A stretch of DNA of 64,000 bases. It comes from Chrysemys picta bellii (lineage: Eukaryota). A program made the position numbers and the translations under genes. The stretch lies in NCBI RefSeq assembly GCF_011386835.1, contig NC_088794.1, positions 4,278,001 to 4,342,000 on the forward strand. Direction: 5' to 3'. How positions within the stretch are numbered: the stretch's first letter is position 1; every line of letters begins with the position of its first letter. Of this stretch, positions 4,677 to 54,068 are shown one piece after another. Under the pieces are notes generated by a model. That model worked only from the letters and a program-made list of their open reading frames with translations, searched no databases and was not told the origin of the DNA.

Positions 4677-5790
4677 CTAATCCTGGGCTGCCTTGTAGTT
4701 CCCAGGGCCCTGGGGGACGTAGTCCAAGCAGTGGGGCCCGCCCAGGCTGGGACCACACACCAGGCTGTACCGGAAGTCCAGCCGGCCGTGGTTCAGGTAG
4801 CAGACCTGGTGGCGACCCTCTCCAGAGCGCAGCGGCTCGTCGCACGTCCCCAGTAGGTCGTCGTCGTACTTGTTGTCCTCGTCCCAGACTTGGAGGCGGA
4901 GCTGGCTGGTCTCCGCCACCCGCACGTGCCCCAGGTCCAGGTGGACGCCCCAGACCGGGTTGTCGGTGTTCCACACGGTTGTCGTCCGCACCTCCCGGTC
5001 CTGGAAGAAGACCTTGACATAGGCATCGGTGTGGCTGGAGTAGTCGCCCCACAGGCCGCTGGCCCGCTCCACCGTCACCGTCAGCTTCCCCTGGCCTCGC
5101 TCCCGTGAGCAGCACATGGTGTTGGTGGAGCCGTCCCCGGGGCAGACGCAGGAGCAGGGGTCGTGGGCGCTGCGCCGGGTCCCCGGCGGGCAGCTGTGGG
5201 TGCAATTCCTCCACAGGGCCCTTTCGGCGATGTACTCGCTCACCGCCTGCCTCAGCGCCTCCCGCTTGGGGTTGTCCTGCCCCACCAAGTTGTGGATGGG
5301 GCGTAGCGAGTAGGACACCAGGCCGGGGCTGGCTTTGAGGCTCTCCATCCAGGCTGAGAAAACCTCGGCGTCCTGCCCCTCAGAGAACAGCAGGTCGGCG
5401 TGGTTGTTGCCGCCTGTCACCTCAGTGTGACGCTCGCTGTAGGTCTCGTGGAAGCTCCGCTTGAAGTTCTGCTTCTTCTTCTGCTCCTCACACTGGCTGA
5501 AGGCCGCCTCGGCCTTGCCCTTCCCAGCCCCGATGCTGACAGAGGCCTCCAGGCTCAGACAGTCCTTGACCTCATCAGCCGTCACCCCATCCAGCGCCGC
5601 CTCGCAGACCCTCACAGCCGTCACATCCCGCACCCGGCCCCCCAGCTGCAGCTGGGACACGTAGTGGGTGCCGTACGTGTTGATCAACTGACGGTACTCG
5701 AGACGCGAGCTGCGGGTGTAATCCTCCGGGAGGTCCCTCAAGGCCCGGGTGAAATGGCTGGTGAGCGGAGGTTTGTGGGTAACGCGGAAC
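4677..5790 (-). CDS. PRF1: Perforin-1-like copy B, last coding exon (MACPF C-terminal half, EGF-like, C2)
   Basis: MACPF signature YGTHYVSQLQLGG; Cys-rich CPPG...DPCSCVC...CC; C2 GLWGDYSSHTDAYVKV...WDEDNKYDDDLLG. Acceptor CCCAG|G at 5791/5790, TAG at 4677-4679. Confidence 0.96.
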
Positions 5791-5859
5791 CTGGGCGAGA
5801 GAAATGGCAACCATGTGACGTACCGTCGGACATTGGCATCTTGTAGGGGTAGAGGTCAG

Positions 5860-6185
5860 TGTTATAGATCCACTGACTGTAAATCCAGAAGGAACCTTTC
5901 TGGTCAGCTAGTCTGACCTCCTGGATAACACAGGCCAGAGACCTGCCCTGAATTAATTCCCGTTCGAACGAGAACAGGTCTTCTAAGAAAAAACATCCAT
6001 CTCGATTTAAAAATTGGCCATGTTGGAGAATCCACCACAGCCCTTGGTAAATCGTTCCAGTGATTAATCCTGTCACTGTTACAAATTCACACCTTATTTC
6101 CCATCTGAATTTGTCTAGCTTCAACTTCCAGCCACAGGATGATGTTAGACCTTTCTCTGCTAGACTGAAGAGCTCATGACCAAAG
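5860..6185 (-). mobile_element. CR1 LINE 3' fragment
   Basis: Minus-strand KLDKFRWEI...TVTGLITGTIYQGL resembles the CR1 ORF2 C-terminus; boundaries approximate. Confidence 0.65.
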
Positions 6186-6814
6186 GTTTGCTTCCCATGG
6201 TAGTTTAGTCTTATATCTTGCCTGCACCTTTACTGAACTGACACGAGATTCAATTATTTTTACACGGGTTACACAGAGAACATAATAATGTGTATTATGC
6301 GCTTGTGATATCATTTCTTGTAACGTCCTCTTCCCCCACCCCCCCGGCCTACGATCATGCTCCTGGCAGCCTGACTCGGTTTCCCCTCTTGGACTGTTCA
6401 AGAAACTCAACGACCACCTCTGTCCATTCCTATCCCTTCTCCGGTTGGGCTTCAATCAATGAACAAACATTCAAAATAAAGTTTCAAGTCCGTGCAGAAG
6501 TCCACACAACCAAATTTTCTCCTCCTCTTCCCAGGCCCTACCAAGCCAGAATCTGAGCATTCTCCCTCTTGTTGTGACCTCCTGCTTCTCATTATAGGAC
6601 CACCCTCCTGATCTCCACCAGATGTGACTCCTGCTTTTCTCTGGGGTGGTTTGCCCCAGAGCCAACCGGTTACACCACTTATTTCCTTATATGAAAGATT
6701 TAAGCTGGCTAAACCAACGCCTAGGAGGAATTCTGTCTTCTGTCAACATTACAGACCTCATATGCCAAACTAGATAACACCGTTGGCCATAAAACAGCCC
6801 TATGCAGCGTATAA

Positions 6815-51767: not shown

Positions 51768-52890
51768 TCACCAGAAGGCCTCTGCCTCTTTCCCCTTAGC
51801 TGTTCCCAGCTGGGGTGGCTGGGAGACATAGTCGAGGCAGCTCCGACCCCCGAGGTGGGGCCCACAGCGCAGGCTGTACTGGAACCAGATGCGGCCGTGG
51901 TTCAGGTAGCAATCCTTCTGGTGGGGCCCCCCAGCCTCCAGCGGGATGTCGCAGCTTCCCAGCAGGTCATCGTCCCACTTGTTGTCCTCGTCCCAGACCT
52001 GGACACGGATCTTGCTGGTGCTGGTGATGCGGACGGTACCAAAGTCCAAGGGGATGTTCCAGACAGGATTGTTGTTGTTCCAGATGGTGCCGGTCCGTAT
52101 CTCCCTTCTCTCAAAGAAGACCTTGACGAAGGCATCCGTACCGGTAAAGTAATCCCCCCACAGGCCACTGGCCTTCTTCACTATCACCATCAGCTTCCCC
52201 AGGCCGCGCTCCCGTGAGCAGCACATGGCGTTGGTCATGGCATCCCCGGGGCAGACGCAGGAGCAGGGGTCGTGGGCGCTGCGTTGAGTCCCCGGAGGGC
52301 AGCTTCGGGTGCAATTCCTCCACAGGGCCCTCTCACGGATGTACTCACTGACTGCCTGCTTCAGCGCCTCTCGCTTCGGGTCGTCCTGCTCCACCAGGAT
52401 GTGGATGGGGTGCAGCGAATAGGACACCGGGCCAGGGCTGGCTTTGAGGCTCTCAATCCAGGCCGAGAAGACCTTGGCATCACTGCCTGAGAAGAGCACG
52501 TCAGTCGTGCTCTCTCCTCCCTCCACCTCCACGTGGCGCTCCCGATACGTCTCATGGAAGCTCCCCTGGACCTTCCCCTTCTTCTTCTCCTCCTCGCACT
52601 TGCTGTTCCCACCCTTGACCGAGCCCATTCCGATACTCACGCCCGCCTCCACGCTCAAGCAGTCCTTGATCTCGTCGTCGGTCAAGCTGCTCATTGCCGC
52701 TTCGCAGACCCGCACGGCCGTCACGTCCCGCGCCCGGCCCCCCAGCTGCAGCTGGGACATGTAGTGGGTGCCGTAGTTGCTGATTAGCTGCTGGTACTCC
52801 ACCTTCGATTTGCTGTCGTACTGGTCCGGGAGGTTCTCCAGCGCCAGAGTGAAATGGCTGGTGAGCGGGGGCATCTCGCTGACCCGGAAC
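51768..52890 (-). CDS. PRF1: Perforin-1-like copy F, last coding exon
   Basis: YGTHYMSQLQLGG; canonical C2 GDYFTGTD...WDEDNKWDDDLLG; ends EAFW-TGA; 1123 nt. Confidence 0.96.
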
Positions 52891-53526
52891 CTGGTCAGGG
52901 ACACAAGGTGAGGAGTGTGTTCAGCTCGGTGAGTCAGCTGAGATCATTAGCTCTGTGTCCTAAGGCCCCAGACAACCCACAAGCCAAGGTCTAAGCAGGT
53001 GGCTCCTAGTCAATGCAACCACCCAGTTTGCTGAACCTCACGACTGTGCTGGGAATACTGCCAGCTGCTTGATAGTTCTGACAGACGTCCCCCACTCTGG
53101 CCATAGCAGGTCGCTGGCTGTCCTGACACACATGAGAAGAAAATCCCAGATAGCTGTCCAGTCCCACATAGGAGCTGGCGCCCCCTAGAGGGGAAACACC
53201 CCTTGTAGCATTTCCTGCCTTCCTAGCCAGCCAATCCCCTGCCCTGGGACCAGATTGGAGATGATGCCCCCTGGAGGAGAAAGGTCCTGTGCCCCATTCC
53301 CCATTATCCTGAAACAGTTCCCCATCCTGGGGCCGGATTGAAGCCAGTGTTCCCTAGAGAGGAAAGGTTCTGTGTCTTATTCCCTGCCCCCCTGAGCAAG
53401 CCATTCTCCCACCCTAGGCCTGGATCAGAGCTGGCGCTCCGTAGAGGGGAAAGGCCCTGTGTCACTGTGTGCTGTTGCTGTAATCCCAATTTCAGGTGAG
53501 TCCTCCTGACCCAGGCTGGCTCTCAC

Positions 53527-54068
53527 CTGTAATAGCCACAGGACACCTCGTGGCTCATGAAGCTGTATTTGTCCATCCGCGTGTGGTCTACCACGAAACT
53601 GGCCAGTTTGGAATGTGATCCGGCCAGCGCCACCTGGACATTAACCTTGGGCTTCACAGGCACGTCCAGCCCCACCTTCCAGTCGTTCTGCACCGCGGAC
53701 GCTGCCGACTCCATCATGCCCATCGCCGACTGCTGCACCGAGCTGCTCAGCTTCTGGCGGCACGAGACGTGGACCCGCCAGTCCACCGCAGCCAGCGGCA
53801 GCCTCTGCCACTGCCCTCCCTGCAGTGGGTTCTGGCACAGGGTGCAGGTGCCGTCCTCGTGCTGCCAGTCGCTGCTGTCAACCAGATAGGCCCCCTTCCT
53901 GCCCATCGTGGTCACATCGATGCCCTCACCAATCAGGCTGTGCCCGGGCACGAAGGCCGTGTGCTTCTTGCATTCATTTTCCGTGCTTGTCTGACAATTG
54001 GAGGTGGCCCCAGGGAAGATGAAGAGGAGGAAGAGGAGGAGGGGGATGAAGGCACCAAATCTGGGCAT
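53527..54068 (-). CDS. PRF1: Perforin-1-like copy F, first coding exon; 554 aa total (alternative ATG at 54080)
   Basis: MPRFGAFIPLLLFLLFIFPGATSNC...; acceptor TTCCTCTAG at 54122-54123; 542+1123 nt = 555 codons. Confidence 0.96.

Follow-up and report, generated by a model that had tools for sequence, protein, structure and literature searches.

Tandem perforin genes of the painted turtle evolve in concert around an island of old variation in the C2 docking loops

Turtle perforins and the closest described systems

Perforin is usually seen as one unvarying effector, with the site and the Ca2+ level of its attack determined by the C2 domain. The best-described relative of the genes treated here is mammalian perforin-1 (mouse PRF1; structures 3NSJ and 7PAG, with 4Y1S and 4Y1T for the C2 domain), which is usually present as one copy. 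In a window of the painted turtle genome (Chrysemys picta bellii, contig NC_088794.1; the window is the whole 64-kb stretch of DNA that was analysed), we found a tandem head-to-tail array of at least seven perforin copies (A to G). These share the MACPF-EGF-C2-tail order and the two coding exons of the mammalian gene at approximately 50% identity and carry distinct sets of loops at the tip of the C2 domain. Amplification of PRF1 in turtles has been described at the STX4-ZNF646 locus, the same type of locus with the same genes (Araujo-Voces and Quesada 2020, PMC7574235), and the gain in copy number is thus already published, as an earlier note made from the sequence of this window had stated. 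That work covers copy number and birth-and-death evolution and contains no C2-loop, gene-conversion or selection analysis for turtles; the term "gene conversion" does not occur in it, and "positive selection" appears only as future work. No report on loop-level divergence of turtle perforins, and no study of gene conversion or selection in them, was found in the literature searched, and the proposal of the earlier note that this divergence is the candidate new part still stands. The array appears to evolve in concert, with the exception of an island of approximately 200 nucleotides (nt) encoding the loops, which seems to keep a few ancient types shared by descent, likeliest through selection for different docking. 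We hold this reading with moderate confidence.

Two other kinds of system resemble this arrangement. The perforin paralogs of fish and the C2-only c2PRF1 (PMC7574235) likewise represent a lineage-specific expansion in which the C2 module is the unit that evolves; unlike c2PRF1, the turtle copies retain the full architecture, and their divergence is limited to the loop island. The MHC class I and II, KIR and Ly49 families, in turn, also combine a concerted scaffold with old trans-specific variation at the surface that contacts the ligand. In contrast to these families, the turtle variants distinguish tandem paralogs of a pore-former and affect a lipid and Ca2+ docking surface, not an allelic peptide- or protein-binding site.

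All copies of the array are located on the minus strand. Copies B to F are complete two-exon coding units, while A and G are cut off by the ends of the window (Table 1). A tblastn search with the window's own exons as query yielded six exon-2 and five exon-3 matches, and all gene models of B to F possess canonical GT-AG splice sites in the same phase with an identical split codon. Exon 3 of B, E and F matched the MACPF domain (Pfam PF01823, E=3e-38 to 4e-39), and the C2 domain was also detected (PF00168, E of approximately 1e-14); among MACPF proteins, a C-terminal C2 domain is found in perforin only (PMC3477005). Exon 3 of copy F aligned to residues 160 to 534 of mouse perforin (3NSJ, E=3e-120) and to its isolated C2 domain (4Y1S, E=3e-36), and copy E encodes a protein that matches a RefSeq perforin-1-like protein of C. 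picta bellii at 100% identity. In translation, the N-termini of A, B, D, E and F read M-P/S-R followed by a hydrophobic run. The structure of a 5′ non-coding exon and two coding exons with a conserved intron, with which RNA contigs agree for E, corresponds to the perforin gene pattern reported in PMC3477005. The 5′ non-coding exon of E is conserved at F (55984-56093) and D (28229-28338) and was not found upstream of C when the copies were compared within the window. The structural alignment, the Pfam matches and the splice sites support the first description of the copies as genuine perforins that combine a conserved core with changed docking loops.

Loop types and their conflict with the rest of the gene

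The loop sequences quoted in the earlier note were all exact on re-reading of the window. Loop 1 reads GDYSSHTD in B, GDQSTATD in C and D, GDYFSATD in E and GDYFTGTD in F; loop 2 reads WNTDNP in B, WNNNNP in C and F, WNNNSP in D and RDNNNP in E; and loop 3 reads WDEDNKYDDD in B, WDEDNKWDDD in C and F, WDEDTWNDD (one codon shorter) in D and LDKDPLTVEK in E. The 3NSJ alignment placed the named ligands and aromatics in the three loops (W427, D429, Y430 and D435 in loop 1; W453 in loop 2; W482, D483, D485, Y486, W488 and D489-491 in loop 3), and the mouse numbering used from the start holds. Like mouse PRF1, copies B to F possess D429, D435, D483 and D485, which are also invariant in all 58 aligned homologs (entropy of 0). 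These four aspartates are critical, unlike D491, according to the title of Voskoboinik et al. 2005 as cited in PMC3477005. The assertion that the differing loops carry the Ca2+ ligands needed to be divided accordingly: the four mouse-essential aspartates do not vary, whereas D489-491 and the aromatic tips do. Varying positions are 430-433 in loop 1, 453-454 and 457 in loop 2, and 484 and 486-491 in loop 3; 10 of the 25 loop positions never vary.

W427, Y430, Y486 and W488 are reported to be needed for activity and lipid contact, and D489 is listed among the Ca2+-interacting aspartates (PMC10400287). Compared to this set of membrane-inserting aromatics, the turtle set is incomplete: W427 is retained in B to F, but C and D have Q in place of Y430, no copy has Y486 (N, T or P at this position), and W488 gives way to Y in B and to L in E. 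This weakens the case for a mode of working exactly like that of mouse perforin, not for membership in the perforin family. The D type carries Y430Q, N457S, a loop 3 with one residue fewer and D489N, and the E type, in copy E, carries W453R, W482L and W488L and has lost the D489-491 cluster. Loop 3 of E differs from that of F by approximately 12 clustered non-synonymous changes and one lost codon. A compensated frameshift was considered as the source of this loop and rejected, since codon reading revealed clustered substitutions and the single codon loss. As counted from the sequences, the net charge of the three loops changes from about −7 to about −3 in E. Lipid order affects mammalian perforin, and anionic lipids disable it (PMC8704153); therefore, changes in hydrophobicity and charge at the tip could plausibly shift the membrane preference of the turtle copies.

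A database search retrieved perforins from approximately 20 turtle species, and alignment of their loops showed that the painted turtle variants are not private to this species. The D set (GDQSTATD, WNNNSP, a loop 3 one residue short and N489) is also present in Emys, Chelonoidis, Mauremys, Caretta, Lepidochelys and Chelydra and partly in Dermochelys, with similar features in Pelodiscus, and the B set was seen in every major group of turtles, side-necked turtles among them. An E-like loop 3 (WDKD, one residue short, DDD lost) was observed in Natator, Lepidochelys, Mauremys and Chelonoidis. A Mauremys reevesii copy, found by chance in a fetched flank, carries EDNNNP and WDTD-PLTDE, near to RDNNNP and LDKD-PLTVE of painted turtle E. 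Emydidae and Geoemydidae separated tens of millions of years ago, and sea turtles and testudinoids on the order of 100 million years ago or more.

Trees of different parts of the protein contradict each other. In the MACPF tree, the C-F clade is arranged by taxon (emydids; Mauremys with Chelonoidis; sea turtles), and the MACPF columns reject an E-type clade (approximately unbiased [AU] test, p=5e-59), while the C2 tree arranges the same sequences by loop type, partly so even after removal of the loop columns. For analysis at the DNA level, nine further intact genes from M. reevesii, M. mutica, Emys, Lepidochelys olivacea and L. kempii were added to give a 526-codon alignment, and nucleotide trees were calculated for 13 genes of three taxa (Emydidae, Mauremys and Lepidochelys). 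The tree of the island (201 nt, codons 396-462, containing all three loops) recovered a D clade (support 95/90) and an E clade (87/91) and rejected an emydid clade (p=6e-5). The other 1377 nt instead recovered taxon clades (Mauremys 98/99, Lepidochelys 92/80) and rejected type D (p=0.001) and type E (p=3e-71).

We then scanned the alignment, without the use of type labels, for sites at which the paralogs of each of the three taxa include both alleles. There are 21 such sites, and 17 are located in the island (17 of its 83 variable sites). None was found in the 51 codons before the island (0/30) or in the 64 codons after it (0/40), and the 344 MACPF codons contain four (4/234). At synonymous positions, the island again exceeds the remainder (4/23 versus 1/146, p=0.0012); this concentration points to shared descent rather than convergent amino acid change. 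A strict count of bipartitions by type, in which only non-synonymous type-supporting sites were found, was set aside because it is partly circular and was replaced by the scan. Traces of recent conversion are visible in Lepidochelys, where E-type and F-type genes differ by a synonymous divergence (dS) of 0.02 in MACPF and 0.16 in C2, with the near-identical MACPF pair being an L. olivacea E-type gene (L004:12747-15105) and an L. kempii F-type gene (L007:13320-15681). This difference points to a very recent conversion tract that ends before the loops. Within the window itself, the pattern of informative sites switches along the gene from CE|DF in the intron to CD|EF in the 5′ part of exon 3. 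The conflict between the island and its flanks, together with the old variants shared within the island, identifies concerted evolution with a divergent island.

Selection, expression and decay of the copies

Among copies C to F, 15 of 25 loop residues are variable, compared to 70 of 502 elsewhere (Fisher p=3.5e-7). A large share of this contrast between loops and core is due to copy E: in its absence, the counts are 7/25 and 54/502 (p=0.018), and the comparison with the rest of C2 is not significant (p=0.13). Variable columns make up 29% of C2, 11% of MACPF and 16% of EGF. The core had been called near-identical over MACPF and EGF; it is conserved, but the wording was too strong for a protein identity of 93 to 95% in MACPF and the column shares just given. 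In terms of entropy, the loops are more variable than the rest within the C-F clade alone (p=0.008) but not more variable than other positions across 48 turtle perforins (p=0.42). Pairwise ratios of non-synonymous to synonymous change (dN/dS; Nei-Gojobori) among C to F amount to 0.33-0.42 for the whole gene and 0.23-0.32 for MACPF; in the loops they range from 0.18 to 0.63, with dS raised as well, and none exceeds 1. A one-ratio codon model for 12 genes gave 0.56 for the loops, 0.66 for the island, 0.31 for MACPF and 0.34 for the rest of the gene. The loops thus evolve approximately twice as freely as the core, with an averaged ratio still below 1. The earlier note had made its case depend on a higher dN/dS in the loops than elsewhere, and the loops do exceed MACPF, yet without passing 1.

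The loop types behave differently from each other. Comparison between families gave 2-2.5 non-synonymous changes for D loops and 1-2 for F loops, the ratio of non-synonymous to synonymous differences per site (pN/pS) of the D island is 0.29-0.40 (p=0.01-0.05), and purifying selection acts on both types within type. For E loops, 7-12 non-synonymous changes separate the species, with a pN/pS of 0.3-1.45. D and F are therefore stable, distinct types, and E is a fast-moving lineage. Non-synonymous and synonymous changes private to single copies of the window (14:15 in C, 10:11 in D, 21:13 in E and 8:5 in F) all remain well below the neutral expectation of about 3.4:1.

Expression was followed through assembled contigs of sequencing runs. 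Contigs from runs of two studies skip exactly 37653 to 38204 (550 nt, GT..AG on the minus strand), the predicted intron of copy E, and therefore copy E is transcribed and spliced. In a third run, exon 2 of E is joined to the 5′ non-coding exon. The E intron is bare in these three RNA-like runs and covered in a DNA-like run, and one contig spans all three E loops without a mismatch. The two other runs continue from 38802 into sequence outside the examined stretch instead of the 5′ non-coding exon used in the third; copy E seems to use alternative 5′ exons. The expression of variant copies, which the earlier note had named as decisive, is hence evident for E in correctly spliced form, while the word shares of D are low.

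In the mechanism that we favour, neighbouring genes would undergo gene conversion, through which their MACPF, EGF, distal C2 half and tail stay similar in any one turtle lineage. The stretch of approximately 200 nt for the three Ca2+-binding loops, which lie at the tip of C2 that faces the membrane, would escape homogenisation. The island would hold a few old, discrete loop types, with F as the canonical type, D and E as altered types and B as a separate, older lineage, and these types would be common to turtle families by descent. The likeliest reason for their survival would be selection that keeps perforins with different docking properties. The four aspartates for Ca2+-dependent binding are kept in every copy, and the differing membrane-inserting aromatics and the differing peripheral acidic cluster should alter the Ca2+ threshold and the membrane preference. 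The persistence of the types in a narrow island amid homogenised flanks, the purifying selection on D and F and the expression of E lend indirect support to the idea that the loops are functionally tuned.

A number of points weigh against this reading. Both selection as the cause and a docking difference between the copies are inferred from sequence. Positive selection was sought at the island and loop codons, and the averaged ratios remained below 1 (0.66 and 0.56, respectively); McDonald-Kreitman-style tables for D versus F, E versus F and D versus E were not significant, because there are too few fixed differences. The divergence of the E-type loops fits relaxed constraint as well as diversification, and only 0.14-0.20 of the words of copy D were recovered in RNA-like runs. 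The loop types and the limits of the island were set after viewing the data, and the genes were sampled partly by loop type; therefore, the AU p-values are optimistic and the shared variants in the loops are partly guaranteed, and the informative part of the scan is the absence of such variants outside the loops. The DNA-level analysis covers three taxa only. Furthermore, the homology of copy C to the other copies stops within exon 2, and this copy therefore lacks a start codon and a signal peptide; it also lacks the 5′ exon, and its RefSeq model begins with MLRCGRREAK. Copy C may not be a working perforin, although its open frame and its private changes give no sign of free decay. (Its homology to the far-upstream region of E picks up again at 21156-21574.) In two Lepidochelys copies (L004:442-1575 and L007:699-1766), an in-frame stop interrupts the match to exon 3 at one common position, its codon 28; these copies likely represent a shared pseudogene and were excluded from the selection tests. 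Together with copy C, these stops indicate that the array contains decaying members.

The main rival, especially for E and C, is neutral persistence: under birth-and-death evolution and relaxed constraint, the loop differences would be meaningless, E and C would be becoming pseudogenes, and divergence would locally block conversion. We consider this explanation rather unlikely, although it accords with a loop dN/dS of approximately 0.5-0.66 that is not above 1, with the quick drift of E-type loops between species, with the missing signal peptide of C and the stops in Lepidochelys, and with a family-wide loop entropy that is not raised. It is less easily reconciled with the D and F islands, which differ at a handful of nucleotides, too few to block conversion, with a D set that is kept in at least six families, with purifying selection on D and F loops within type, or with flanks that are homogenised on both sides of the island. 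Even for E, the frame is open in four families, private changes (21:13) fall short of the neutral expectation, and the transcript is spliced and expressed.

A reading along the lines of the earlier note, in which positive selection goes on acting on hypervariable loops in an arms race with diverse microbial or parasite membranes, appears improbable to us. Amino acid differences are enriched in the loops among C to F, the loop dN/dS is approximately twice the background, and the rewritten loop 3 of E (clustered non-synonymous changes with a codon loss) differs again in each species; such selection may apply to the E lineage. For the array as a whole, however, dN/dS is below 1 in every partition, the D and F types are nearly frozen over the whole span between turtle families, and 10 of the 25 loop positions are invariant, with loops no more variable than other positions over all turtle perforins. 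A few discrete old types, a loop dN/dS of 0.56, null McDonald-Kreitman-style tables and unraised family-wide entropy do not match the terms "hypervariable" or ongoing diversification, which we have abandoned.

Independent recent duplication in each turtle lineage with convergent loops, without old types or gene conversion, would also explain a MACPF tree arranged by taxon, but we regard it as very improbable: the codons for Q-S (CAA TCT) and the codon deletion are the same wherever they recur, shared synonymous variants cluster in the island, and the phylogenetic pattern switches between intron (CE|DF) and exon 3 (CD|EF) inside the window. False mosaics from collapsed or chimeric paralogs are hardly credible, for although tandem arrays are hard to assemble and the window contains two gaps, copy E agrees at 98-100% with independent RNA contigs and with a DNA run and also matches RefSeq, and the same types occur in seven other assemblies.

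Features of the window and meaning of the loop series

The coordinates of all gene parts are summarised in Table 1. Copy A shows a best identity of 61% to any homolog retrieved, and the match of the right end of the window to the 3′ flank of F indicates a further copy, G, off the right edge. Compared to mouse PRF1, the B type lacks the terminal FW: its tail ends in ...AAQD or ...AAQG (stop region of B at 4677-4720) instead of the ...KEAEAFW tail with the terminal Trp of C to F, A-like types and mammals, and this ending is conserved across B-type orthologs (P0036, P0037, P0039, P0043 and P0047). The C-terminus of mammalian perforin matters for trafficking and processing. Read by eye from the alignment to the mouse structure, with hand-counted positions, the residues of the oligomerisation salt bridge, R213 and E343, are apparently Q and H in C to F and Q and R in B. 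A segment at 29744-29896, 2.4 kb upstream of D exon 2, matches the first approximately 51 residues of the RefSeq isoforms of 618-619 amino acids of other turtles and is possibly an extra upstream coding exon or an annotation artefact.

Table 1. Parts of perforin copies A to G and the assembly gap next to copy B, in window positions
Feature	Position	Strand	Remarks
Copy A exon 2 only	1175..1699	-	exon 3 beyond left edge; tblastn; distant perforin paralog
Copy B exon 3 (MACPF C-part, EGF, C2, stop)	4677..5790	-	loop island 4857-5051; Pfam MACPF and C2
Copy B exon 2, ATG and hydrophobic N-terminus	11280..11815	-	intron to exon 3 of 5489 nt
Assembly gap (N)	12677..12885	.	5′ flank of copy B; touches no coding exon
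Copy C exon 3	17597..18719	-	loop island 17795-17989, mosaic: loop 1 of D type, loops 2-3 of F type
Copy C exon 2 remnant	19972..20432	-	intron of 1252 nt; homology to other copies ends at 20432
Copy D exon 3	25043..26162	-	loop island 25241-25432, D type
Copy D exon 2, ATG and signal-like N-terminus	26798..27330	-	intron of 635 nt
Copy E exon 3	36536..37655	-	loop island 36734-36925, E type; RefSeq match; RNA contigs
Copy E exon 2	38206..38747	-	intron 37656-38205, 550 nt, removed in RNA contigs
Copy E 5′ non-coding exon	39670..39779	-	joined to exon 2 in one run (38799 to 39670 skipped)
Copy F exon 3	51768..52890	-	loop island 51966-52160, canonical F type
Copy F exon 2, ATG and signal-like N-terminus	53527..54068	-	intron of 636 nt
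Copy G 3′ flank	63691..64000	-	coding part beyond right edge; 91% match to stretch right after F stop codon

The gap near copy B lies 862 nt upstream of the start codon, between exon 2 and a minisatellite remnant (13001-13114), and is spanned by no coding exon or reading frame. Open reading frames (ORFs) listed across it are artefacts of translated N (runs of X). By analogy with copy E, a 5′ non-coding exon of B could lie in or beside this gap. A second gap of 799 N (59096-59894) lies outside the array features discussed here and is the cause of a bin of low GC content and of a 425-amino-acid "ORF" at 59074-60351. A 75-bp minisatellite (3129-3454, 40121-40704 and 56436-57087, with remnants at 29532-29607 and at the site near B) lies upstream of the 5′ non-coding exon of several copies, at a distance of a few hundred bases, and belongs to the duplicated unit. 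The expected coding intron of copy A is occupied by a GC-rich 40/80-bp minisatellite (1-1158, 72% GC), whose long ORFs, including one with a weak, sub-threshold Galaxin-repeat match, were rejected as repeat artefacts. The unusually long 5.5-kb intron of B contains two arrays of a 42-bp repeat (8916-9426 and 10617-11201). Ten intergenic ORFs gave no Pfam match above the threshold.

The array is a clear case of an island of old variation that persists inside a gene family otherwise evolving in concert, and it refines the perforin expansion of long-lived turtles from "more copies" to "different copies". It provides a natural series of perforins with one pore-forming core and differing tips, kept since the turtle families studied here split; the age of this series is probably 100 million years or more. 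If the favoured reading is true, the series would offer a ready-made test of how membrane and Ca2+ selectivity depend on the C2 loops, and germline diversification would reach cytotoxic effectors, beyond receptors alone. A bolder proposal, which we regard as doubtful, is that turtles keep an ancient perforin toolkit, in which the cores would be interchangeable through gene conversion and could co-assemble into mixed pores, alternative tips would be selected, and E would act at a different Ca2+ threshold or on other lipid surfaces, e.g., anionic or microbial ones. If true, this would mean that the target-membrane specificity of a vertebrate cytolytic effector has been diversified in the germline.

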